Positions 4,141-54,830 of a stretch of 64,000 bases of DNA are shown piece by piece. The stretch spans positions 54,374,001 through 54,438,000 of the forward strand of contig NC_043000.1 of assembly GCF_006345805.1 (NCBI RefSeq), given 5' to 3'. The notes under the pieces were generated by a model that ran no database searches, was not told the DNA's origin, and was given only the letters and a program-made list of their open reading frames with translations. Both the position numbers and the translations under genes were made by a program. The stretch comes from Octopus sinensis (taxonomy: Eukaryota). Position 1 is the first letter of the stretch; each line of letters begins with the position of its first letter.

Positions 4141-5420
4141 CTGAAAAAGTTACAAATGTTTAGGAATTATAAATACGTTTAGTAACCATATAGGAAAATG
4201 GAAACTCAGAATAGCAGCTAATGCTTTATATCGATATTCATATTAATGTTAATACTTCTTAGCGTATGAAAGAAAAGAAAAATATCTTGTAATAAAGGAT
4301 TAAAAAAAGGAAAGAATAAACGATTTAAATGCTGCGTATTACACACATGTGTTGTAGATGCATTTACATTTCAGAAGAGATTAAGTGCTTACACACACAC
4401 ACACACACACACACACGCGGATACAAAATTTACTGTAAAAACCAAAATATAGAGTGATAGCATATATAAACATATGTGTAAAAGTATATGGTATCAAATC
4501 AAATTTAAGAATATTGAATTTATACCACAGAACAGGAAACTACACCTCACAAACGGAAATAATATTTATACATAAGATTATGAAAAAAATATCTATATAA
4601 AATAAGTGAAGAAAAGCCGGTAAGTTGATTGAAAAAGGAAAGAAACCGATCTATGATGTGATCTCATGTATGGTGTATAAAGCTTGAACTTATATTAAAA
4701 GCACTGCAAGTTATAACGTCTGAATGTAAAATAATTATAGGTTACAATAATTGTAAGAAGCACATACAAAAATAAAACACCCTTTCATCTATGACCTATG
4801 TAAGGGATATTGAAATATTCAGGTTATTTAAAACTGATTTGACACACATATACATCCCGTTGACTTCCTCATTCAGAATACATAGCGCCAGTAATAAATT
4901 ACTAAATAAGTTTGTTGTAACAAATAAACACGAAGAAAAAAAATGATGTTAAGGCAGAAAGCTTGAGAAGAAAAAAAAAACTGTTGAAAGAAACAAATAA
5001 AATTATATTTTTTCATATATGTTTAAATGAATTTACACAGAATACCAACAAGTCTTTCAGGCAGAATTCATAACTTATTAATTTTGAACTATCTGCGAAA
5101 TAGTTTAATTTTCCGTATTTTGTATATAAAAAACCTGTACCTTTATTACATTTAGCAGGAATTGAACTTCTTTGTTTATGTACAGGTGTGTATGTGTGTG
5201 TGTCCATCTGTGTATATATTAGCATGTCGTATGTTTATATGTGTGTATATAAATATATATATATGTATATATGTATGTGTTTGTGTTTGTATATTACATG
5301 TTACCGGGTGCATCAGTATTTTTGAGGTTATTTACATGAAAATAGAAAATGATGCATAACTCATCAAAGAAACGGTGTATTTGAAAACAAATTATCTTGT
5401 GAATCCTTTTATCACGTCTA

Positions 5421-6343
5421 TTGTTTATCATCCCATGAATAATGCGATTTTTCATACTTCTTTTATTTTTCAAAATTAAGATAAACAAAGTACTGTTATA
5501 ATCTAAAATATACTCTCCTTCTTTTTCTACAATGCTCTTCCATCTATCTAGTAGAATTCCGAGGATTCTCTTCCAAAGATCACTTGTTCGTGACGAAAAA
5601 TATTCCTCCAGTACTGTTCTGACCTCGTCTACAGATTTCATATTTTCTCCGTCCAAATGATTTCGAAGACTGCGGGATAAATGATAATCAGATGGGGCAA
5701 TGTCCGGTGAATATAGTGCGTGGGGCATCGTTTCCCATTCAAGCTGCTCCAGCCTTCGGAATGTCATCCTCACTGTATGTGGCCGAGCATTATCGTAAAA
5801 GAAGAATACCTTTCGTCTTGAAACCAAAGGTGGTCGTTCTTCTAGCGCTGTTGTCGATGAATGGTTGAATGACCAAATCTAAGCTTCTCTGCTAGTTCCT
5901 CAACAGTTACGATGGAATTTTGTTTCACCAGGGTTTGCAGGACGTTCTCGTCGTCCCTTACAGATCTTCCAGGACGAGGTTTGTTTTCTACGCTGTAGTG
6001 TCCGGCTCGGAATTTCTGGAACCACCTTTGACATTGGCTTACACTTATTAGCCGATCCCTATGTACTGCATTAATATTCCTAGCACTTACCGTTGCGTTG
6101 TTGCCTTTATTGAACTAATAAAGCAAAATAAGCCGAATATGCTCCTTTGTCACTTCCATTACAGCTTTGGAAAAATAACTTAAAATCGAACTGCACTTTT
6201 CAAAACTTGCTGTAAGAATAAGGAAAATGTAAAATTACTCCCTACTTTTAAAGCAAGTTGATGCAGGTAGTTTTATCCCGTCTACCTCCGATTTTTAGTT
6301 CATGCAATTGAAAAAAACCCGCATTATTGACAGGATGACCCAA
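5421..6343 (-). mobile_element. Mariner (DD34D), internally deleted, both TIRs present
   Basis: Imperfect ~30-bp TIRs with TA flanks. N-terminal MEVTKEHIR/WFQKFRAG/PRPGR is joined directly to C-terminal DNARPH...YSPDIAPSDYHL (ORF 5294-5827); the WVPHEL and first catalytic D region is missing. Confidence 0.92.
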
Positions 6344-6354
6344 TATTTTATGAT

Positions 6355-6985
6355 TCTACCGTTAGCGTCAGTTACGTGGTCGGAAGAGTTGACATGCTCG
6401 AAGCAGATGAGCTTTATCAATTTTGGATAGTGCTGGTTGTGGCGAACTTGATAGAGTGTATGGTATTTTGGAGTGTTTATTGACTGCTCTCTCCACTACG
6501 CCCCGTGCGTAATAGTCTAGTAGAATGAGGTCTGGTAAACTAGCAGGCTATGTGTCTGGGAGGATATGACCATTGAGATTGGAACGCATTGGTGCTTGTG
6601 TTGTAGCTTTATATGACGAGACAAAGTCTTGTTGGAAGACGTACGGTCATCTGCTGCATATTCAGTCTATCCAGATCCTCACCACTCTCTGTAACACCTG
6701 CGTGTATATAGCGGCATTGACTCTTAAGACCTGTAAAGAAAAGTGAGGCATGACATCTACCTCGTTGCTGATGCCTCCCAGAACCATCACAGTTGCTACG
6801 AACTTGGAATGCATGACCGTTGAAAACTCGTTTGTGTCTATAAAAAGTTGTCGTTCCTTCGGTTTATCTTTGTGTCCTAACCGAAGTTTTTCACATCGGA
6901 GAAAAGTAAAGCATTCAAAATCTCTGGGTGTTTTAACTTGTTTAGTTAGCACTAAGTGCAGGATCGATCTATTTGATGAAACACT
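6355..6985 (-). mobile_element. DD37D/maT-type Tc1-mariner transposase fragment (decayed)
   Basis: FSDVKNF, VMVLGGISNEVDVMPHF, LRVNAAIYTQVLQRVVRIWID and the downstream RPYVFQQD-like and KAHLLRACQLF motifs. Confidence 0.8.
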
Positions 6986-7954
6986 TGATAGTTGCGGTCT
7001 AGCACGGCCGAAGTCCAGTGACTGAAACAAGTATATGATAAAAGATAATTGTGTTATATGAACAACTATTTAAGTGGAAAAGTATGATATTTTACCTTAC
7101 AAACAGCAGAATTGACGGCTTTACTAACTGAAGTTTTCCTCACTTCAACAATAAGTAGTTTCAAGTAGTACAAGGTATTACATTAAAAACATCCAAATAG
7201 ATTTACAACAGAAATAACTGTTTTACTGATTGTAAATCTGTCGCTATTTTTATCAGCTTGTCTTTTCTTCTTGCAGTCTTCCCAACATTATCTTCTTACT
7301 TTTTCCTCACTATTTGAGAGTAACACACTCATAGTGATATTTTTCAATGGCGTGTGAGACAAATTACACTTTGAACAGAAAAATGCAACACTTATTTTTC
7401 TCAGTGTTGCTCATCTATATTCAATTTTAAAAATTGATTGCTTTCATTATTATATTTTCGTCCCTTCAAATATATTAATTGAAAACATCGGCGTGTATTT
7501 ATAAGGAAAATTGGTAAATTATGACATCGCAATAAAAGTCGACGAAATTTTCGAAAGAAATATAAATCAAAGGAAAAAGAAATATCAGACCTCCACTTGA
7601 ATTTATATCGAAAATTCATAATTGTAATGACGTCATATTAGAACATTTTCCAAATGCTACAAATTATCTTGTTTTATGAAATTACTTTAAAAAATGCTTG
7701 CGGCGGACTGAAAAAGACGGTCGCACAGAGTGACGCTAATGATTTTCGGGATTTGCGTCTATTCATTTCAGAAACAGCTTGACGTATTGGTGAGAAGTTA
7801 GCGGCGTTGGAGAGCATAAATATTAAAGCTGTGGATGACAAAAATTTAGCTGATATAGAGGATTGGAAGTCATTGAATATTGAAAATGCTGCATCGGGAC
7901 TTCCGCTGAATGCTCTGAGAATACTGTAAATGCTACAAGGCATGGCATGCATTT

Positions 7955-21704: not shown

Positions 21705-22627
21705 TTCACCTATATGTCTATCTATCTATATGTAGCATATCTTATACGTATACGTTGAGAAATAGGTACGTTTGATTTTGGGTGAAATTTTCTAGGATTG
21801 TTCAAGTGTGGAATATTTTGAAGCATACAGCATGGGATAACTATTGACTAATATTTCTATATTACTAGAATTATTGCCTCTACTAAAATTTTCATTGCGA
21901 GATATGCGCTATTTTCTGTACAATACTTTCAGTCTTTGATATGAAAGAATATCATATTTTATGGATATATATGTGTTTGCTTATGGTAATAAAATATACA
22001 TTGCTTTTGTGCTGTATCTTTCTTCAATGATTTCTGATTGCTTAGGTTCTTTGAAAGTGAAAATCTTAAGGCAGATGCATTTCTGAAGCTTTTCACATTA
22101 AAAAGATCACAGCCTATATGAAAATATGCGCTTAGGTTACATCTAGTCATTTAAAGATTTTGTCATCTAAAATTTCATTGTCAATAAGCTTTTCTGTACA
22201 TAGGTAATTGTCCTATAATATACCAGTTTCTAACTTTTAGTTAAGAGTCTTTTCCGTATCTACTGAATTCCGGTATATTAGTGTTTCTATATTATCACTC
22301 ATTAGAATATGAGAAACTATGAGTAGAATATGAATACACACACACACAAACATGTTTATATATATGTATATATATGTGTGTATGTAAATGTGTATGTATG
22401 TATATTTATATATATGTATGTATATATTATGTATATATCTGTATATATATATATATATATATCTGTATATATATATATATATATGCAAGTATATATATGT
22501 ATATTGATATAATATATATATATGTATATATACATATACGAATATATATGTATGTATATAATATGTATATGTATACATGTATGTATATATGTATGCATAT
22601 GTATATTTATATGTACATATATATATA

Positions 22628-22677
<50 letters not shown>

Positions 22678-22799
22678 ACAAGCATGAGTCAAAAACATGT
22701 ATGGGATTTCCAGTGATGAGTTTGGCAAATTGTATCTCCATGTTGTATCATTAATTTTATATAAATTGTTGTCCAATTGTTGTTGTATCGCTTATCGTT

Positions 22800-23915
22800 T
22801 ACTTTTATATATAACACATATTGTTTACTCTTCATTTTACAGCTTGGGTAATAAGTGGTGGAAAAGTTGCAATTAAGGCTGTTTTGCGCTATAATGGAAG
22901 AGAAAGTCTGAGTGGTAAAAGAAATTGATGAAATGGAAGCTCAGGAACTCTTAGCAAGCGTGGCACAAAATTGGTTCAGACTTTTCAAGAAGGTGGCACC
23001 AGCCTCGAGGACAAACTAAGGTCAGGGAGACCTACTGTTGTGGAACGTAAGGCCTTGCTTGAAGTAGTCGAAAAACCGCCAAACACAACCACTTACATAT
23101 TGTTGTCAGAACTTCGTCTTTCACAAAGCACCATCAGGTGACACTCCCCATCAACTCGGTCTAATGAACAGACGTCATCGAGAAGCTTCTCTTGAACTGA
23201 CCAATGACCAAGCTCAATGATGTGTGAACATTTGCGAACAACTGCTGCCAAATCCTCGAGTAGCTCTGTTTTGGTATCGATTTGTAACTGGGATTGAAAA
23301 ATGAATACTTTTTGGTAATCTCAATAGGAGAAACTAGTGGGTTCATTCTGTCCAAGCTTCAGAATCAGTCGTCGTACAAGGGTGGTCTGCACATGAGATC
23401 ATGTTGTGTTAGAATTTCAAGGGGACGTTGTACTTTTGAGTATGTTCTATATGGTCATGCTGTGAATGCTACCCTTTATACTAAACAACTGCATCTAATA
23501 TATTATGCCTGGAAAACCCACTGCCCGGAACTGGACAATCGAAGAAGTGCACTCTTACAGTGTGACAATACCCCAGCACACACTACTAATGTAACCATGT
23601 GCAAAATTTGAAGAGATTGATGAACTGGAAGTGCTACGACATCCTGCCTACAGCGTACACCTTGCACCATCAGATCATCATGTTCTCCTAGCCATGGCAC
23701 TTTTCTTGTAGGGACGGAATTTCAACAACGTGGATAAGGTTAAAAATGGGTGCAGCAAGTTTCTTGTCTCTGAGCCAAATGTTATAAGTGTGGTACTGAG
23801 CACCTGGCATAAAGATTGCAGCAGCCAATAAAATATGAAGGGTATATATTTTGATGACTAAACTCTTTCCGTACGTAATTTGTTTGAACTATTAAAGCTG
23901 GAAATACTAAAAAAC
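22800..23915 (+). mobile_element. Decayed mariner, copy 1 within the duplication
   Basis: WFRLFK-like HTH, RSGRP, CDNTPAH and HPAYSVHLAPSDHH motifs with many stops; TIRs not recognisable. Confidence 0.85.
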
Positions 23916-23961
23916 TGTCACAGCCTAGTGTCTCCCTCCCGCTCCCCCTCTCACTCAGTAT

Positions 23962-23994
<33 letters not shown>

Positions 23995-24119
23995 CTACAA
24001 GCATGAGTCAAAAACATGTATGGGATTTCCAGTGATGAGTTTGGCAAATTGTATCTCCATGTTGTATCATTAATTTTATATAAATTGTTGTCCAATTGTT
24101 GTTGTATCGCTTATCGTTT

Positions 24120-25235
24120 ACTTTTATATATAACACATATTGTTTACTCTTCATTTTACAGCTTGGGTAATAAGTGGTGGAAAAGTTGCAATTAAGGCTG
24201 TTTTGCGCTATAAATGGAAGAGAAAGTCTGAGTGGTAAAAGAAATTGATGAAATGGAAGCTCAGGAACTCTTAGCAAGCGTGGCACAAAATTGGTTCAGA
24301 CTTTTCAAGAAGGTGGCACCAGCCTCGAGGACAAACTAAGGTCAGGGAGACCTACTGTTGTGGAACGTAAGGCCTTGCTTGAAGTAGTCGAAAAACCGCC
24401 AAACACAACCACTTACATATTGTTGTCAGAACTTCGTCTTTCACAAAGCACCATCAGGTGACACTCCCCATCAACTCGGTCTAATGAACAGACGTCATCG
24501 AGAAGCTTCTCTTGAACTGACCAATGACCAAGCTCAATGATGTGTGAACATTTGCGAACAACTGCTGCCAAATCCTCGAGTAGCTCTGTTTTGGTATCGA
24601 TTTGTAACTGGGATTGAAAAATGAATACTTTTTGGTAATCTCAATAGGAGAAACTAGTGGGTTCATTCTGTCCAAGCTTCAGAATCAGTCGTCGTACAAG
24701 GGTGGTCTGCACATGAGATCATGTTGTGTTAGAATTTCAAGGGGACGTTGTACTTTTGAGTATGTTCTATATGGTCATGCTGTGAATGCTACCCTTTATA
24801 CTAAACAACTGCATCTAATATATTATGCCTGGAAAACCCACTGCCCGGAACTGGACAATCGAAGAAGTGCACTCTTACAGTGTGACAATACCCCAGCACA
24901 CACTACTAATGTAACCATGTGCAAAATTTGAAGAGATTGATGAACTGGAAGTGCTACGACATCCTGCCTACAGCGTACACCTTGCACCATCAGATCATCA
25001 TGTTCTCCTAGCCATGGCACTTTTCTTGTAGGGACGGAATTTCAACAACGTGGATAAGGTTAAAAATGGGTGCAGCAAGTTTCTTGTCTCTGAGGCAAAT
25101 GTAATAAGTGTGGTACTGAGCACCTGGCATAAAGATTGCAGCAGCCAATAAAATATGAAGGGTATATATTTTGATGACTAAACTCTTTCCGTACGTAATT
25201 TGTTTGAACTATTAAAGCTGGAAATACTAAAAAAC
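24120..25235 (+). mobile_element. Decayed mariner, copy 2 within the duplication
   Basis: Same inactivating mutations as copy 1. Confidence 0.85.
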
Positions 25236-25278
25236 TGTCACAGCCTAGTGTCTCCCTCCCGCTCCCCCTCTCACTCAG

Positions 25279-25312
<34 letters not shown>

Positions 25313-38232: not shown

Positions 38233-38430
38233 GTATGTACGTATGTATACGAATATATTTGTGTGAAAAATAAAACACATGAACTCTCTTAATTGGGTAT
38301 AATTCAATGCTAATTTACGAACGATTACAAATGTTGTCGGTTTGCGATATACGAGTCTGATAGGGAAGAAACTGAAATAAAATTACGATATTTATCAAGT
38401 AGAATGAGACTATTATCAAAGGCCAAAATA

Positions 38431-38522
38431 TATTTGATAAACTTATTCACATATATATATGCAGTAATCCCCCGACTATCACGCGCGTTACATTCCAAAA
38501 CTCGCGATAGTCGGGGGATTAC

Positions 38523-38582
<60 letters not shown>

Positions 38583-38597
38583 TAAGTTTATCAAATA
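38431..38597. repeat. Nested fold-back: 19-bp IR / (TA)n / 19-bp Tigger-like TIR pair
   Basis: 38431-38449 vs 38579-38597 and 38462-38480 vs 38506-38524 are perfect inverted repeats. Confidence 0.9.
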
Positions 38598-39531
38598 CTC
38601 TATAGGGTTCATATCTGGTGGTTGGCTTGCTTGGCTATGGAAGCTTTCTAATGCCATTGTTTTCCAACAAATCTTGGGTAATTTTAACCGTGTGACAAGG
38701 AATCTCATCTTCCAAAAATAGAGAGTCTTCTTTAATCATTTCACCACTGGAGAAGTTTGGAAGGAGTCCCTTCTGGAGTATGGATACATATGTATTTGAG
38801 TTTATCGTTCCCTCACACTCCACCAGCTTTGATCAATCACTGCTTCAAATTGTTCCTCAGGCCGTCACAGAATAGCTGCTGTGTTTCATTGCTGGTTTCG
38901 ATCTTTTCACATAAAATTATTGATCACATATTCTCCAGACCCACACTCGACCACTATCAAGAAATACAGCGAATCTGAACTCATCAGAGAATATGACAGT
39001 GTCCCAAAATGCTAATGGTCTCACCCCCATCTCACTGAACCAATCTTTTCTCTGCTGCATATTGGCTTCTTTCTTCCTGCTCTACTATAGTAACAAAGTT
39101 TTTGGAGATACCTGACAGCTGTTCTGGGACTGACATCAACTTGCTCTGCTATGTCAGAGGTCTTGCAAAGCGGATTATCCTCCACACTCTCTTAGCAAAG
39201 AGAAGGGTTCTGTCAGAAGGCTCTGGTTGATCTGGACAGGGTGATGTGGACACTTTCCCCTCTCTGGTGAATTGCACAGTCACTCTATTAACTGTAGAAA
39301 GCGGGATCCCAAGGTTTTCTGGTATTTTACGCTGACTATACCCACCTTCAGAATACGACCACTTTGAAATTCAGACAGTGCCGAGGCTTTTTTGTACATG
39401 GCATGATCAAACAGTCACATATAGAATCTGAAACAAAAATGTCAATTAATAAGAAATATAAACCATTACAAGTTAGAATAAACTGAAAACAATGTTTTAT
39501 GGGATGTCTATTTACTTCTAACATCTGTGTG
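38598..39531 (-). mobile_element. Tc1-family (DD34E) element, 3'-truncated
   Basis: WDTVIFSDE, EGTINSNTYVSILQ, FLEDEIPCHT and PDMNPIE motifs; 5' end TA-CACACAG. Confidence 0.88.
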
Positions 39532-42144: not shown

Positions 42145-42292
42145 GTCTTCCAAACAATCTTTAATCGCCCAGAGCCCATAATCTCTACCGAAATAAAAGA
42201 AGCGGATAAGGACTTGAAAATCAACACTGGAGAGATTACGTTAAATGAAGTTGTAAAAGTTATCCGTGAACTGAAAAATGGAAAGTCATCGG
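42145..42292 (+). mobile_element. RTE-type LINE fragment (linker before RT)
   Basis: FQTIFNRPEP...EADKDLKINTGEITLNEVVKVIRELKNGKSSG is the typical pre-RT LKNGKAPG segment. Confidence 0.75.
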
Positions 42293-42675
42293 GATTTACG
42301 TTTGGAGTTCAAATTCTGCCGACATCGACTTTGCTTTTCACCCTTTTGGTGTCGATTGAATAAGTTATGCACTGGGGTCGATGTAATCGACTTAATCCTT
42401 TCTCCCAAATTTAAGGCCTTATGCTTCCAGTAGAAAGGTTCATCCTCCCCCATTATTATATAATGCCGCCAGCTGTAAGAATACTAAGCATTTCGGCCTA
42501 AATTCTTAGTGACGTTTCATTCAGCTCTACGTTCTGATTACGCATAACGTCGAGTTTGACGTGCATCTCATCCTTTTGGGATCGATGCTAAGCCCTATTG
42601 TCATTGTAATCGAGTAGCCCGACCCCAACAATAAAAGAAAAATTTCAGGCCTTGTGCAGATAGTAGCAAGGACTA
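42293..42675 (+). mobile_element. Two adjacent SINE family A fragments
   Basis: 42293-42440 (body and tail) and 42465-42675 (more diverged). Confidence 0.7.
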
Positions 42676-42978
42676 TTTCATGAATATTTCTCACAATGAT
42701 ATCAACGATTATTGTAAGCTCCGTTTAGAAATAGCTATTATATAATTTGAAACTAGATAAACTCGTTGTAATATTTTTTAAGAATAAAATCTCCTGAAAA
42801 TGTTTGTATTGTAATTTCTATTCAAATTTGGCTTTTAAAATAGCATTTTTAAAACCAATCTAAGCAGATGCTTTTGTACAATTTGCAAGTTGACAGACAT
42901 AAGTGCATTTATGAAATGTATATAATATATCTTCATAATTTGTTTATATTACGCTATTAGGATATGTAATTCACTTAG

Positions 42979-43248
42979 GTAATGTTGATCGAGATTTAAA
43001 TGACGTAATGAAATGCATTGAAGCCACATATCTGTGGACATACGTCTGCTTTAGCCAATACTTTCTTCCAAAGATGATGGAAGCTGATTTGAAGACATTT
43101 CGAATTTATTTCTTGTACGAAGTGAAACCATACGGTAGCAATCTCATTGGTTCATCTTAACTGTTCAAAATAAATGCAATAAGTTTTGCATCCATCTTAA
43201 TTTTTTTCTTTTTCAGATAAAATTTCTATCAACATTTACAAATTATAA
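42979..43248 (+). other. Candidate penultimate and terminal exons (42979-43134, 43217-43248)
   Basis: A 156-nt phase 1-1 open exon, an 82-nt intron with a strong polypyrimidine acceptor, then DKISINIYKL*. The donor gtagca is weak and the product is not recognised. Confidence 0.25.
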
Positions 43249-44663
43249 AACTTTGAGAATATATAAATTAAAGTTAAAATATATTCATATATGAAACCCA
43301 TGATTTCAATGCGACACACATTTTTAAATGTATCTTTAAAATAAGGATATTGACGAACAAATGGCGGTATCGCCAAGTATTTGAATCATATATGAGAAAG
43401 ATATAATTGTTAATACATGTGTTAGTGTTAGATTTATGCTATTGTTTGCTTGCTTCTATTTCACAAATATAAATTATTAATGGGTATTATATATCTTCCA
43501 TTTTTTCTCGTGTGTGTTATTGTATCAGAAGCAGATGTTTAATATCGAATAAATTCATTGCAAATGGTTCCCAAAAGAGAAAACAATAAAGTCAGTAATA
43601 GTTTTTGTACTGTCTTTTAATTATAAAGAAAAATGAAAACATATGAAAGGAGAGACATAGAACGTCATTGATATAGATTTGCAAAAGTTTCTTTGATAAA
43701 GAAAATGTTAGTCCTCTAGGGAAAATCTTTTCGAAAAATAGAAATATATCTCTCGATCTTGTAATATACATGTTACACATACGTTAAGTGACTATTGATT
43801 TTCTTATTAATTATAATCCCACGTGTTATACCACCTATTATACAGTATCATAGATTATGAGAAGGAAAACTGAATTACTTTTTGGGAACTAGCTAAATTA
43901 ATTTGTTTTAGTTGTACTCGTCTTGTTATGGTACTATGCAGATGTGTCTGTGGAATATATAAATATCAGGAAGCATATAGCCAAATTGCATTCAGGTTAT
44001 AACATACAGTCAATTTTAACCAGGTTTATATTACGATAGAAATTAGCTTTCAGTATTTCTACCACTCTGATTCTCACAGCAATTTCCAATGAAGAATTCA
44101 CTGTGTGTAAATTCATATAATGAAATCCACATATAAGCATCTTAAATTATTGGGCTACACCTTCAGGTTTACGAGTTACCATTTTACTTTAAAAGGAAAT
44201 AAAAAGAAAAGCAATAACATTCTTATTGCAAATAGCGTAGATCTTAATGCATTCACGTAGGATTTGCTAGAATAATGAGCTAATATACGTTTTTGGTTAA
44301 TATTTGTAACTGATAGACTACTTCTATCAGTGAATATATAATATATCCAGAAGTTTGAATTGTTACAATAAATAATATCAGTTTCTTGTCAATATTGGCG
44401 AATAATGATGTTTTTCTGAAAATTAATATTACAATCATTCAAACGGATTATCTAACCGGGAAGTTCACACTAAGTAATCTCACCTTTTGTAATTTTATAC
44501 TTAAAAAGTAGTCTGCATGAACGCCATAATTCCGAAGGATCTCATTAGCTGTAGCACATCTATATACAAGTTCAAAAGTTTGATATGCCATGTTTCAAAA
44601 TGCAATCTCAGCCACCATTTTAGCTGTGATATAATTCTTTGTAATGAAAACAACCATAGATTC

Positions 44664-45239
44664 TCATAAATCTTCTTCACCGTCAATATTTAATTGTACT
44701 TGGAAGAAAATTTTTATTCTTCTGAAAACTGAACCTTTTCTTTTCTGTGCTGCCTTTTCGGTCACTTCTCTGTGTTTTTGAGGCATCAGTAAATTAAATG
44801 GGTCACAAATAGCATTTCGGCGAAAATGAAAACGCTTGCATTTGAATACTTCAGGATTTGGAATATTACCCATTGATCGAAACAACAACCAACTTTTTTT
44901 TCGGACAACATCGTTTAATTCTGAAATTTGTTCAATGTCTACAGCTTCATTTCCATCACTGACACAGTCTTTTTCATCTCTGTTTTTTATGTAAAAAATG
45001 CCAAAACGACGCTGCTTCTTTGATGGCTTATTTTTATAATCAATATTATCCAATGTATTTGTATTAATTTCTAATGTACTGGTGTCTGAAATACGCAAAT
45101 TCTCATTCGAAGAAGTTTGGTTTTTATCCATATTCGTAGAATAGTTCCATTCATCTTCATCAATATCACATAGCTTTAGAATTTCTGGTTCTGAATTTGT
45201 ACCTTCATCTGTCTTAACGATTTCTTGTATCCTATCCAT
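44664..45239 (-). CDS. Uncharacterised 191-aa charged, probably disordered protein with a PKI-like pseudosubstrate motif
   Basis: Longest non-repeat ORF; ATG in TCAACATGG context; acceptor ttaattcag at 45331; GTGAGT (45853) and GTAAGT (45785) donors upstream. The frame is open back to the acceptor, so an N-terminal extension is possible. Confidence 0.65.
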   Translation of the reverse strand: MDRIQEIVKTDEGTNSEPEILKLCDIDEDEWNYSTNMDKNQTSSNENLRISDTSTLEINTNTLDNIDYKNKPSKKQRRFGIFYIKNRDEKDCVSDGNEAVDIEQISELNDVVRKKSWLLFRSMGNIPNPEVFKCKRFHFRRNAICDPFNLLMPQKHREVTEKAAQKRKGSVFRRIKIFFQVQLNIDGEEDL

Positions 45240-47299
45240 GTTGAACAATTCAGTTAGAAAATAATGTTTGATCTTCACTAAATAAATTTGCTTGGTAGTG
45301 TTCAACCATGTGTAATTGATTTGGTTCTCCCTGAATTAATTTGCATTGAAGAAATGAAAATATTTGCAATTAATCAGGCATATTTTCAGTTTTTGTTTTC
45401 TGAGAACACACGTAATCAAATATTTTTTCCTTTCTTTTTAAATGAACACACCGTACACTAACGACATTTTGTTGTTAGTCACTTGATACTATTAATATTT
45501 ATGAATGGCATTAAAATAACATCCCTTTTATTAATGCCTGATGATGCCGATATTTTGATCGTGATTATCTGAAAAAGAAGAAGGGAAATAGTAAACTCCG
45601 AACAAAAGAGTAACGAGAACACTAGGAAAGCGTTATTTCTGAAGCATATATATATATGTATATATATACACGCATACAGATTTATAAACACAGATACACA
45701 TATGTATGTATATGGTTAACATAGAAATATTGTTAATTCGAAGCCGTTTGTAGCCTTAATCTATTGAAGAACTTGCAGTACTTACTATTTGAGTCAGTCG
45801 ATATTTTAAATTTTAACCGTTTGGAAAGCCTAACACGAATATTACTAACTCACTCGCATTCTAATCGAATTCTATTCTTTCCCAGATATACATTTGTAAT
45901 TTAAACTAGATACATTCATTTAAATACATTAGATAATTGTGAATATTTTCTATATTTATATGAATACCATCAGTCAGTATTACCTTAAGCTCTCGAAGAT
46001 TCGTGCTGTGATTCTTTGTAATATATTACAGTATTCACTTTATTGCAAACCTAGAAAATGGGTACAATTTATACATTCTTATATTCTGTCTCTTTCACAA
46101 CGATAAAAGATAAAGTCGGCTCAGCAGTATCAGAAAATATAGCGGTGTAAGAAGTAACTATTTATTGCAAGACGTTTATCCTGTGTCTTACTGTTTCTTG
46201 AGAAATATTTGCGTATAAAAGAAAAGAAAAATGTAATATATATCACTTAAGTGTTGCTATAATACATTGTTACTTATAAATTATGTAGCATGTAAAGGTG
46301 TTCATATTCGAAGTATCTGAAGAAACCAATATTTCTTCATTTAGATATTTGTCGATAATTTTACTTATCTACTATAGCAGGAATTCATATAAGTCACATG
46401 TATAAAAAATTACCTGTATGGAGGTATTCCTTCGGTAAATCTTTACAGCAACGTTTTTTTCCTCAAGAACATAAATAATAGGTGTATGTGAATATCTTTG
46501 TATACGCATATATATAAATTATATATTTGTATGTTTACGAGTGTCTGATTGAAATCGCATATTTGTGTTATTTTTTCCCATAGATAGAAATCTACTTTTT
46601 GTTTTGAAACCATTGTCAGGTACAGGTGTCTTTTTTGAAAACTTCCTCGCTAATTTAATATCTTATCGGCTATTTAAATGTCACATCCCTTATATGAGAA
46701 GTTTAATGCCACACTATCCCAATAAAGTATGGACTGGTATGCCATTCTGATACACCTATTCACTCTGAACAAATAAAGCCTGTAAGCCGACGTTATATAA
46801 AATACGTACTCTATCAGGTTCCGTCTATTATATGTTCAGTGATATATCTTGCATGGTTGCTTCTGTACGCTAAATGCTTGATTGTTCTTATTTCTAGTAA
46901 AGTATAGTAACAACACTAGTTCCATGTCATTAAAGTATTACCCACAGGTGTCAATAATACTTAGTAACCATTTACCAAATGCAGCTAAAAATATTTCAAG
47001 TTGTCATAATCTTTGGGTTTCTCTATCTCCGTTGATCTCTCATAAAATCATACATAAATAACATTGCTAAAACCAAATCACAAAGAGTAAATTCCTAACG
47101 AAGATAAGAAAATTCTCCTGTGATGACCAGAAAAAAACACAGAATATTATCGCCGCATTTTCTAATACAGCTGCAATAGGCTATGCTTTTTAAACTATTT
47201 AAACGCAAATTTTGTCAACACATTTCGGCGCTCAAATAAAATGCCCCACATTAAACAGATATTTAGAACATAAATATCGTGTCTAATTTAATATTCAAA

Positions 47300-47365
47300 A
47301 TATGAAAGAGTCACTGTTTTTTGAGAACGTCAGCGCTAATCTAGTCGCTTATTGGCTAGTTATAT
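47300..47365 (-). promoter_or_regulatory. Possible promoter (CCAAT box + CRE-like TGACGT) for the minus-strand gene
   Basis: Minus strand reads ctagCCAATaagcgactagattagcgcTGACGTtctc in a repeat-free, locally GC-richer block. Motif match only. Confidence 0.2.
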
Positions 47366-48535
47366 CTCGTGTCTCTTGGACGAGAAGTTTCCTTTCACAC
47401 GGACTGTGTCAGATGCATGGATACGTTATACCTTCTGAGAATTCGACAACATTGTTGATGTAAAATTATTTTTACTAGGGAAGAACAGCTACTCCGGGCA
47501 TTTTCGTGTGTGTGTAGAGAGAGAGAGAGGGGGGGAAGAGAGAGATTTTAATATGCAAGCATACTGTGTTCAATGTTTTCCTGTCTTATCCTTAAATTTG
47601 CACAGTAAAGTACGATTTGTGCAAAATTTACTTGCTATTTCAAGCAGCCAAAACGGAACGTGAACTTTGTTCTTTGTGGAATACGGAGACCTCCACAGAC
47701 TGGAATCAATTATTAGTTTCATATGAAGCCAATTCTCTCTCTCTCTCTCTCTCTCTTTGAGTCACTCACTCACATACTACTACACTCCCTTACTCCCCTC
47801 TCTCTCTTTCTCTCCCTCTAGCTCTCTTACACTTTTCTGTTTTATACCGAAGATTAGTACAAGAAGCAATATTGTTATTATAGGTAGTTGTAATAAATGA
47901 AGAGTGGACAAGTTATACGGAAGTTAAACACATACACATCTGAAGTCATTTATAGTTACATATATACATGCATGTATGTATGTATATATGTATGTATGTG
48001 TGTACGTATGGGTGTGTGTGCATGTATGTATATATACATATGTATATATACATATGTATATATAGAAAGATAGACAGATAGATAGACAGGCAGACATACA
48101 GATAGATTGATAGATAGATAGATAGATAGGTTGAGAGGAAGAAAGATATTCTTACATAAACATCATTATATTAGGGACTAAATGTATAAAAACTGTAAAA
48201 TTCTAATAAATGGCTCCACATATATGGAAAAAAATGAGCATCTTCATAGGTATAAAGCATAATTATTCCATACGTATTTGAAGAGCCAATACAACCCTCA
48301 TCAAAAGAAGCGCCATAATAACATTTGAGAGAAAACCACCACTGTGATCCACGATCGATTTATTTTCAGATATCACATCATACAGTTAAGCAATGTTGAG
48401 ATGTCACTCAACATTCTAAACAGAGTAGCCAAATACCCATCATTTCAAACACTAACCTATTCAGTAATAAAGTACACATTGTATACATTATGTGAAAGCA
48501 ATTCAGGTGGTAAAGGCTACAATGTCGGTCGCTTA

Positions 48536-48757
48536 AGGCAGCGAGCTGGCAGGCACCTTAACGCGCCGGGCGGAATGCTTAACGGTATTTCGTCTGTCGT
48601 TATGTTCTGAGTTCAAATTCCGCCGAGGTCGACTTTGCCTTTCATCCTTTCGGGTCGATAAATAAAAGTACCAGTTTCGCACTGGGGTCGGTGTAATCGA
48701 CTTAATCCCTTTGTTTGTCCTCTCTATGTGTAGCCCCTTGTGGGCAATAAAGAAATA
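48536..48757 (+). mobile_element. SINE family A, full length, with ~17-18-bp target-site duplication
   Basis: TACAATGTCGGTCGCTTA (48518-48535) and TACAATGTTGGTCGTTA (48758-48774) flank the element. Confidence 0.93.
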
Positions 48758-54106: not shown

Positions 54107-54389
54107 TAGTTTTATTTTTTATAGCGTGCATTCACTTCACTACCGATCGAAGCTCTGTGTGCCTTGGGTATGTGCTGTGATTTGTTGTGATGCTCTGATG
54201 GTTATTGTATGGAAAGTGTTCTGCGTAGGATGTTTGCAGTGCCTAGTAGTGCAATTTTCTGTATGTTATATGTGTTTCTAAGTCCTGGTGTTTTTGTTAT
54301 GTATTTGTCTAAATATTTTTTTATCATGCCTAATGCACCTACTATGATAGGAATTGTTTCTGTTTTTAGATTCCACAATATTATTATTA

Positions 54390-54432
<43 letters not shown>

Positions 54433-54463
54433 AATATTATTATTATCATTATTATTATTATTA

Positions 54464-54506
<43 letters not shown>

Positions 54507-54547
54507 CATTATTATTATCATTATTAACCTCTACGCCATATGCCCCC
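53893..54547 (-). mobile_element. tRNA-head/(AAT)n/hammerhead SINE, left copy (interrupted by a LINE tail)
   Basis: 53893-54032 is the reverse complement of 54662-54802; 54528-54545 is the reverse complement of the head start; hammerhead at 53939-53984. Confidence 0.75.
54104..54377 (-). mobile_element. R4/Dong-like (restriction-like endonuclease) LINE 3' end inserted in (AAT)n
   Basis: WNLKTETIPIIVGALGMIKK...IQKIALLGTANILRRTLSIQ* plus 3' UTR; AAT tracts on both sides. Confidence 0.8.
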
Positions 54548-54830
54548 GGGCATATGGCGAAGAGGTTCAGAGCGCGGGCTACTAACCCCAAGATTCCGAG
54601 TTCGATTCCAGGCAGTGACCTGAATAATAATAATAATAATAAGAAGAAGAAGAAGAAGAACATCGAAAAATACATTAGGAATGAGAGCCCAGGTTCAAAA
54701 TTTTCTCCAAGACCCCTGATGAAGGCTAGAGGGTATATCAGCCGAAATGTTGTGTTAACAACAAACAAGATGAGGACAAATATCCGTCAAATGTAAATAA
54801 TGTACATAATTCCTCATCTCTTGAATATAG
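54548..54830 (+). mobile_element. tRNA-head/(AAT)n/hammerhead SINE, right copy
   Basis: A-box TGGCGAAGAGG, B-box GAGTTCGATTCC, (AAT)n(AAG)n spacer, hammerhead motif at 54711-54756. Confidence 0.8.

Follow-up and report, generated by a model that had tools for sequence, protein, structure and literature searches.

Does this stretch of Octopus sinensis DNA, a window of 64,000 nucleotides (nt), encode a protein that inhibits cAMP-dependent protein kinase (PKA), or an open reading frame (ORF) that resembles one for other reasons? The ORF in question occupies 44664..45305 on the minus strand, with 213 codons counted from a TTG at 45305 and 191 amino acids (aa) from the first ATG at 45239, in AT-rich animal DNA (30-38% GC) that is full of microsatellites. 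Its product includes the segment EVFKCKRFHFRRNAICDPF (translation of 44796-44852, minus strand) and within it the motif FKCKRFHFRRNAICD, which an initial annotation likened to the pseudosubstrate of the PKA inhibitor PKI. The 191-aa frame and its motif were found exactly as described there, a regular expression for F-x7-RRNAI-x-D returning exactly 44802-44846 from the six-frame translation of the window. The PKI(5-24) sequence used for the comparison is that of PDB chains 1APM_I and 1ATP_I ('PEPTIDE INHIBITOR PKI(5-24)'). Numbered from the phospho-acceptor position (P0), the two sequences agree at seven positions with identical spacing, namely F (P-11), RR (P-3/P-2), N (P-1), A (P0), I (P+1) and D (P+3). 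The arginine found at P-6 in PKI is displaced to P-7 (Arg136), also as first described.

When the window was simulated 200 times with a first-order Markov model, the complete F-x7-RRNAI-x-D pattern never occurred, and RRNAI was seen at a mean of 0.045 per simulated window; the looser pattern RR.A[ILVM] is frequent by chance, with a mean of 2.5. The stop-free run around the ORF spans 223 codons and is the longest in the window (mean 128 and maximum 183 over 100 simulations). The ORF is present as a single copy within the window and no terminal repeats flank it, making a transposon origin unlikely. Although the ORF was initially called an orphan, a homology search covering ~5.8 billion proteins found five relatives of the 191-aa protein. 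Three of them are 191 aa long, namely O. bimaculoides A0A0L8G9M8 (97% identity to the window protein), the protein of another octopod (88%), and a 'hypothetical predicted protein' of Argonauta hians (60%); the others are two longer proteins of 269 and 272 aa (41-44%) that probably come from decapod cephalopods. The coding sequence is one unbroken ORF at all relative loci that were fetched, and five cephalopod lineages have kept the frame intact. A tblastn search of the window for a second exon matching the N-terminal extension of the 269-272-aa relatives found none.

Purifying selection on this frame is strong and is concentrated on the C-terminal module. Ratios of nonsynonymous to synonymous substitution (dN/dS, Nei-Gojobori) for the window ORF were 0.21 overall against the other octopod, with 0.41 for the N-terminal half and 0.017 for codons 113-191, and 0.22 overall against Argonauta, with 0.45 and 0.028 for the same two parts. 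Across codons 129-152, which contain the motif, the comparison with Argonauta shows 0 nonsynonymous and 11 synonymous differences, and the motif is identical or near-identical in 6/6 cephalopod sequences. The test of selective motif conservation by dN/dS that had been proposed for this ORF was thus borne out over the C-terminal 79 codons. The simulations together with dN/dS effectively rule out a chance ORF, and the ORF is a real, functional, single-exon octopus gene under purifying selection.

How widely the gene product is distributed was addressed by searching 1.84 billion representative proteins with a profile built from the six cephalopod sequences. The search returned 67 matches at E<=1e-3, 19 of them at E<=1e-10, in proteins of 71-1216 aa that have only a ~65-aa C-terminal module common to all 67. 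Outside the cephalopods the profile aligns over residues ~126-191 of the query only, and always at the extreme C-terminus of the match. All members that bear names are mollusc 'hypothetical' or uncharacterised proteins, apart from those of Biomphalaria, which carry the automatic label 'serine-rich adhesin for platelets'; the named genera are Mactra, Dreissena, Sinanodonta, Lottia, Patella, Biomphalaria, Bradybaena, Pomacea, and Littorina. Many of the other members derive from ENA or Logan assemblies. With the module present in bivalves, gastropods, and cephalopods, the family is mollusc-wide at least, and the initial description of the protein as lineage-specific does not hold. The family consensus is EAxxCxR-h-xxRRNALCDPxxMxMPQxTRERxExxVxxRKxSVxRKxSxFFxxxLxxxxEEDLI-COOH (h = hydrophobic). 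The window protein fits the module definition CxR-hydrophobic-xxRRxA[LI]xDPxxMxMPQxTRE...RKxS...EEDL(I)-COOH in two alignments (A2 and A3), and it is the octopus orthologue in a mollusc-wide protein family that lacks annotation. When the window protein, the six cephalopod proteins, and 64 family members were scanned against Pfam, no domain came up to threshold. Searches of PDB sequences with the profile and with the 75-aa module gave noise only (E 0.56 and 1.3), a Foldseek comparison of the AlphaFold2 model with the PDB gave 0 matches, and a literature search for an earlier description of the family retrieved only work on PKI, Smoothened (SMO), and ARHGAP36.

Within the module, conservation is sharpest at the motif itself. 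The family comprises 74 distinct complete domains, 71 of which were anchored on the motif by a regular expression, and the three unanchored domains are also RRxAL by inspection. Among the anchored domains Arg occupies both P-3 and P-2 in 71/71, and P+1 is L in 65, I in 5, and V in 1 (71/71 in all), these being columns partly selected by the expression, which needed two basic residues and a hydrophobic P+1. The P0 residue is Ala in 71/71, and across all 74 distinct domains Ser or Thr is never found there. The intervening P-1 is variable (N 49, D 6, C 5, F 5, G 3, and K, Y, or S). Upstream, P-7 is Arg in 70/71 and P-6 is L23/F19/W14/Y6, while C is found at P-9 in 50, A at P-12 in 41, and E at P-13 in 31; downstream, P+2 is C in 37 and A in 26, P+3 is D in 62, and P+4 is P in 64. 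The Phe at P-11 emphasised in the initial annotation stands for cephalopods, to which it is specific, and elsewhere gives way to L/I/V/F in about half of the anchored domains. One apparent exception to the pattern, P0092, is a sequence cut at P-3 by the end of its contig. In A2, a regex-independent alignment of 46 sequences, the invariant residues are R136, R140, R141, A143, Q154, R157, E158, R167, S170, and L191. The distance from P0 to the C-terminus is a constant 50 residues across the family and 49 in cephalopods. Judged from these alignments, the R-R-x-A-[L/I/V] motif is the most constrained element of a novel conserved domain.

The motif conforms to a class that has been defined elsewhere. 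PKA's catalytic subunit (PKA-C) recognises an experimentally defined consensus, R-R-x-S/(A/G)-hydrophobic (PMC5059767), and the hallmarks of the PKI motif in Smoothened are Ala at P flanked by RR at P-2/P-3 and a hydrophobic P+1, together with a bulky hydrophobic residue upstream and an N-terminal helix (bioRxiv 2021.07.05.451193). The family invariants P-3 R, P-2 R, P0 A, and P+1 L/I/V match both the consensus and the hallmarks, so that in sequence terms the motif agrees with the definition of the PKA-C pseudosubstrate class to which RI, PKI, ARHGAP36, and SMO belong. That the C-terminal module is a cAMP-independent pseudosubstrate for PKA-C is the interpretation tentatively favored here, at somewhat less than an even chance. 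The invariant core R(P-7)-hydrophobic-x-x-R-R-x-A-[L/I]-x-D-P would constitute the PKA-type pseudosubstrate, with the two arginines docking on acidic residues of the catalytic-subunit cleft, the hydrophobic P+1 residue occupying the P+1 pocket, and the invariant Ala at the phospho-acceptor position blocking phosphotransfer. In this way the protein may engage the free catalytic subunit of PKA, blocking or sequestering it with no need of cAMP, as do PKI, ARHGAP36, and Smoothened. The adjoining basic amphipathic helix with its invariant RKxS would probably serve a second function, for example localisation, export, or phospho-regulation. Both PKA-C as the partner and inhibition as the effect are inferred from the motif.

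The family was compared with known PKA regulators. The core string RRNA[I/L]-x-D is identical to that of PKI alpha/beta/gamma (PF02827), the cephalopod members have their Phe at P-11 with the spacing of PKI(5-24), and the octopus protein has downstream of the motif a hydrophobic pattern like that of leucine-rich export signals, I175-xx-F178-xx-V181-x-L183. However, the PKI profile (PF02827) had no match at E<=10 in the window protein and cephalopod set or at E<=1 in 64 family members, and PDB searches at E<=10 with the profile and with single sequences recovered no PKI chain, though PKI(5-24) chains are in the library. PKI is a protein of ~75 aa with an N-terminal inhibitory domain followed by a nuclear export signal (PMC7723848), whereas the family motif is found in proteins of 71-1216 aa and sits 49-50 aa before their C-terminus. 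PKI has Arg at P-6 where the family has it at P-7, and the family has ~45 more conserved residues and an RKxS-bearing basic helix after the motif. Because profile and sequence similarity are lacking and the architecture is opposite, the mollusc family is, as far as sequence can tell, not a member of the PKI family, the Arg at P-7 in place of P-6 being a further difference.

ARHGAP36 offers another analogy: its motif RRGAV binds and inhibits PKA-C (PMC5059767) and here too R-R-x-A-hydrophobic lies in arginine-rich surroundings inside an otherwise unrelated protein. ARHGAP36 differs in being a vertebrate protein with a RhoGAP domain and in also driving the degradation of PKA-C, whereas the mollusc family has no recognisable domain and is known here from its sequence. 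The PKI motif of Smoothened was recognised by the very hallmarks that the mollusc motif shows, and sequences outside it raise affinity (bioRxiv 2021.07.05.451193). That motif is in the tail of a G-protein-coupled receptor and has low affinity (~0.8 uM), relying on avidity and phosphorylation by the receptor kinase GRK, whereas the mollusc proteins are soluble-looking and carry the motif in a fixed C-terminal module. The family core R-R-x-A is also that of the RI inhibitor site (PMC12608923). Pfam scans found neither cyclic-nucleotide-binding nor dimerisation/docking domains in 64 family members; any inhibition would therefore be cAMP-independent, and the window protein, with no cyclic-nucleotide-binding domains detected, is classed as something other than a PKA regulatory (R) subunit. 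The RII site, RRxS followed by V-C, offers a parallel to the P+2 Cys of the family (37/71), as the initial annotation had proposed.

Several observations weigh against a PKA pseudosubstrate. The conserved Arg is at P-7 and not at PKI's P-6, the P-11 Phe occurs in cephalopods only, and Pfam and PDB searches gave no sequence homology to PKI or R subunits. The ~45 conserved residues beyond the motif (DPxxMxMPQxTRE... and the helix) form an extension that a simple pseudosubstrate does not need, and could point to another partner, or to a folded unit with the Ala and Leu as packing residues. The preference for R-R-x-[S/T]-hydrophobic is also found in other basophilic kinases such as PKG and Aurora, so the partner is not uniquely specified.

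These observations lend weight to other explanations of the module. It may be a folded or partner-induced helical domain for a non-kinase partner such as calmodulin, an importin or exportin, a membrane, or nucleic acid, with RRxAL having a structural or electrostatic role and the likeness to PKI being convergent and functionally irrelevant. This explanation is rather doubtful and yet carries a sizeable share of the probability: conservation reaches past the motif to D (P+3), P (P+4), M (P+7), Q154, R157, E158, R167, and S170, the basic amphipathic helix at aa 154-183 is the only confidently predicted element, one AlphaFold2 model has the motif itself helical, RR.A[ILVM] is as common by chance as the simulations show, and homology to any PKA regulator is lacking. 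A structural helix, however, would impose an i/i+3/i+4 periodicity, whereas the constraint is on five consecutive positions with only P-1 free; P0 Ala is never swapped for Ser, Gly, or another small residue in the 74 distinct domains; and no PDB fold matches, with pLDDT, the per-residue AlphaFold2 confidence, low to moderate over the motif.

Less probable, and on balance unlikely, is a pseudosubstrate or docking site for another basophilic Ser/Thr kinase (PKG, PRKX-type, Aurora, ROCK, or PAK family) with the same R-R-x-S/T-hydrophobic preference. Basophilic kinase specificities overlap, the conservation pattern would be equal to that expected for PKA, and the P-7 Arg with a hydrophobic P-6 is unlike the determinants of PKI's selectivity for PKA; yet the string RRNA[IL]xD is identical to the PKI inhibitory core, and the precedents found for free-standing RRxA-hydrophobic inhibitors (PKI, RI, ARHGAP36, SMO) all act on PKA-C. 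The window is repeat-rich and holds mariner-like and SINE-like fragments (SINE, short interspersed nuclear element), which might suggest an open frame that arose by chance, a piece of a transposon, or a pseudogene without function. Such an origin is highly improbable for a single-copy ORF that has no flanking terminal repeats, whose stop-free run exceeds that in all 100 simulations, and whose frame is intact in five lineages at a dN/dS of 0.2 overall and 0.02 in the module.

If the pseudosubstrate interpretation is correct, molluscs, and possibly other invertebrates, could have an unrecognised family of cAMP-independent PKA-C inhibitors, non-homologous to PKI, convergent on RRNA[I/L]xD, and coupled to a phospho-regulatable basic helix; this broader proposal is possible, and clearly short of an even chance. 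It would mean a further level of control over PKA in animals where PKA-dependent neuronal plasticity is studied in detail (Aplysia, octopus), the family occurring in molluscs, in which the part of PKA in learning and memory is well dissected. To our knowledge, the pseudosubstrate inhibitors of PKA-C consist only of the R subunits, the three PKIs, ARHGAP36, and Smoothened, and each of those found earlier has altered the understanding of a pathway. An unannotated conserved family with a canonical R-R-x-A-hydrophobic as its most constrained element is thus a concrete candidate. Should the motif serve another partner, the family would still represent a conserved domain that is new and has no counterpart in Pfam or the PDB.

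The remainder of the protein is predicted to divide into a disordered N-terminal half and a helical C-terminus. AlphaFold2 models were built with the family alignment for the octopus protein and for one bivalve-type member. In the octopus model aa 1-100 have a pLDDT of 46-56 and no secondary structure, and helices at 154-169 and 171-183 have a pLDDT of 88-93, their bivalve-type equivalents scoring ~90. The motif region is helical in the octopus model (pLDDT 64-71) and extended in the bivalve-type model, with short helices on either side at P-14..P-11 and P-6..P-3, the former in that one model only. Low or model-dependent structure over the motif is, as modeled, what would be expected of a motif that folds on binding.

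Two PKA-consensus sites had been listed initially, RKKS (aa 113-116) and RKGS (aa 167-170), and both are in the translation. RKGS proved to be family-invariant, whereas RKKS is restricted to octopods and is replaced by RNNG or RRNG in the longer cephalopod proteins. A second RK[VI]S site is found in the helix of most non-cephalopod members and has been lost in cephalopods (RRIK). The segment IKIFFQVQLNI, initially put forward as a loose export signal, is present at aa 175-185, and its pattern I175-xx-F178-xx-V181-x-L183 is compatible with such a signal, with the spacing kept in most members; the point is weak, because such patterns are common in amphipathic helices. The acidic tail reads EEDLI or EVDLI in most relatives (family consensus EEDLI). 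Three further motifs were considered and set aside by inspection. EEDL was rejected as a KDEL-like endoplasmic reticulum signal, relatives ending in EEDLI and having no signal peptide; KIFF fits the PP1 RVxF motif in cephalopods alone, the family having KVSQF; and the B56 LxxIxE motif is absent.

Upstream of the core, a basic KKQRR patch reported initially was found at aa 74-78, where it belongs to the cephalopod-invariant motif RRFG[I/L]. This has the non-phosphorylatable form R-R-x-G-hydrophobic. Five bivalve-type members (P0010, P0013, P0017, P0020, and P0022) have instead RR[H/F]STG.F, an RRxS consensus site, 56-66 aa upstream of the core, a distance similar to that of the cephalopod motif. 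The two motifs may correspond. Most other members have at least one RRxS or RxxS site upstream of the core. The positions of these features are given in the table.

Features of the octopus gene and its flank, with window coordinates
Feature	Position	Strand	Description
Coding sequence, complete, single exon	44664..45239	minus	191 codons and stop (44664-44666); from the ORF list and 60-97% identical octopod/Argonauta proteins
Motif FKCKRFHFRRNAICD	44802..44846	minus	aa 132-146; direct translation and regular expression
Core RRNAI	44808..44822	minus	aa 140-144; P-3 to P+1 of the putative pseudosubstrate
Arg136 at P-7, before hydrophobic/aromatic P-6	44832..44834	minus	R in 70/71; invariant in A2
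C-terminal family module	44667..44864	minus	aa 126-191; dN/dS 0.017-0.028 for aa 113-191
N-terminal half	44904..45239	minus	aa 1-112; fast-evolving, predicted disordered; dN/dS 0.41-0.45
Basic amphipathic helix	44691..44780	minus	aa 154-183; sole confidently ordered element
RKGS	44730..44741	minus	aa 167-170; family-invariant R-K-x-S basophilic-kinase consensus in the helix; R167 and S170 invariant in A2
Acidic C-terminal tail EEDL	44667..44678	minus	E188, E189, D190, and L191 invariant in cephalopods
RRFGI	44997..45011	minus	aa 77-81; R77, R78, F79, and G80 invariant in six cephalopod sequences
5' flank, conserved	45240..45499	minus	90.4% gapless identity to L003, surrounding non-coding DNA 72-80%; probably 5' untranslated region or proximal promoter

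Additional sequence motifs mark subsets of the family. Eight members (P0025, P0028, P0035, P0037, P0057, P0068, P0090, and P0092) form a subfamily with a further hydrophobic motif that is strongly conserved, S-T-[IV]-T-[RK]-G-[IL]-L-[SA]-T-[SA]-G-F-[IV]-W, located 46-52 aa upstream of the core, and a subgroup comprising P0049, P0052, and P0053 has the motif C-x-H-G...C-L-L-C-Q; neither motif has a Pfam match. One 161-aa member, the P0064 cluster (loci L009-L014), is found on contigs from >80 sequencing runs of the SRR148649xx-SRR148651xx series, presumably those of an organism that has been resequenced many times.

The DNA around the gene was compared with the loci of its relatives. A contig of the other octopod (L003) runs colinear with window positions 42770 to 47399, with an identity of 94.5% over the C-terminal 79 codons, 89.3% over the N-terminal 112 codons, 90.4% and gapless over the 260 nt upstream of the ATG, and 72-80% in other non-coding DNA; Argonauta DNA aligns to the window across the ORF only (44661-45256). 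Logan contigs were considered as possible transcripts and rejected as such, L003 being colinear genomic DNA and L004 ending in a (CA)n repeat. The 5' flank is conserved to the level of coding sequence between the two octopods. It contains a short out-of-frame upstream ORF, with its ATG at 45309 and its stop just ahead of the main ATG, and the flank may be a 5' untranslated region (UTR) or a translational control element. On the contig of the 272-aa homologue a polypyrimidine-AG acceptor is found 20 nt 5' of the ATG, which suggests that an intron in the 5' UTR precedes a single coding exon.

Elsewhere in the window are several repetitive elements. ORF fragments at 5294-5827, 6662-7030, and 38325-38708 (all minus) contain DNARPH...YSPDIAPSDYHL and PPDMNPIEYL and look by eye like remnants of mariner/Tc1 transposases; they had no Pfam match at E<=0.01. 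At 54202-54796 overlapping ORFs run on both strands through an (ATT/AAT)n array (54379-54526) and encode poly-N and poly-L. The end of the minus-strand ORF, ...IPIIVGALGMIKK...LLGTANILRRTLS, is similar to the C-terminal tail of a retroelement ORF, and the only Pfam match for these ORFs was a sub-threshold one to DUF4834. A short interspersed repeat with GAGTTCAAATTC.GCCGA..TCGACTTTGC is present twice, at 42277-42401 and 48581-48711, in copies of 75-90% identity; the repeat looks like a SINE, and the copies are outside the gene, 2.3 kilobases (kb) downstream and 3.3 kb upstream. Finally, a tandem duplication at 22654-25292 consists of two almost identical copies of a ~1.32 kb unit, with exact matches at an offset of 1319/1320 running for 241, 882, and 189 nt. 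It starts inside a (TA)n array (22357-22675) and represents either a very recent event or an assembly artefact.
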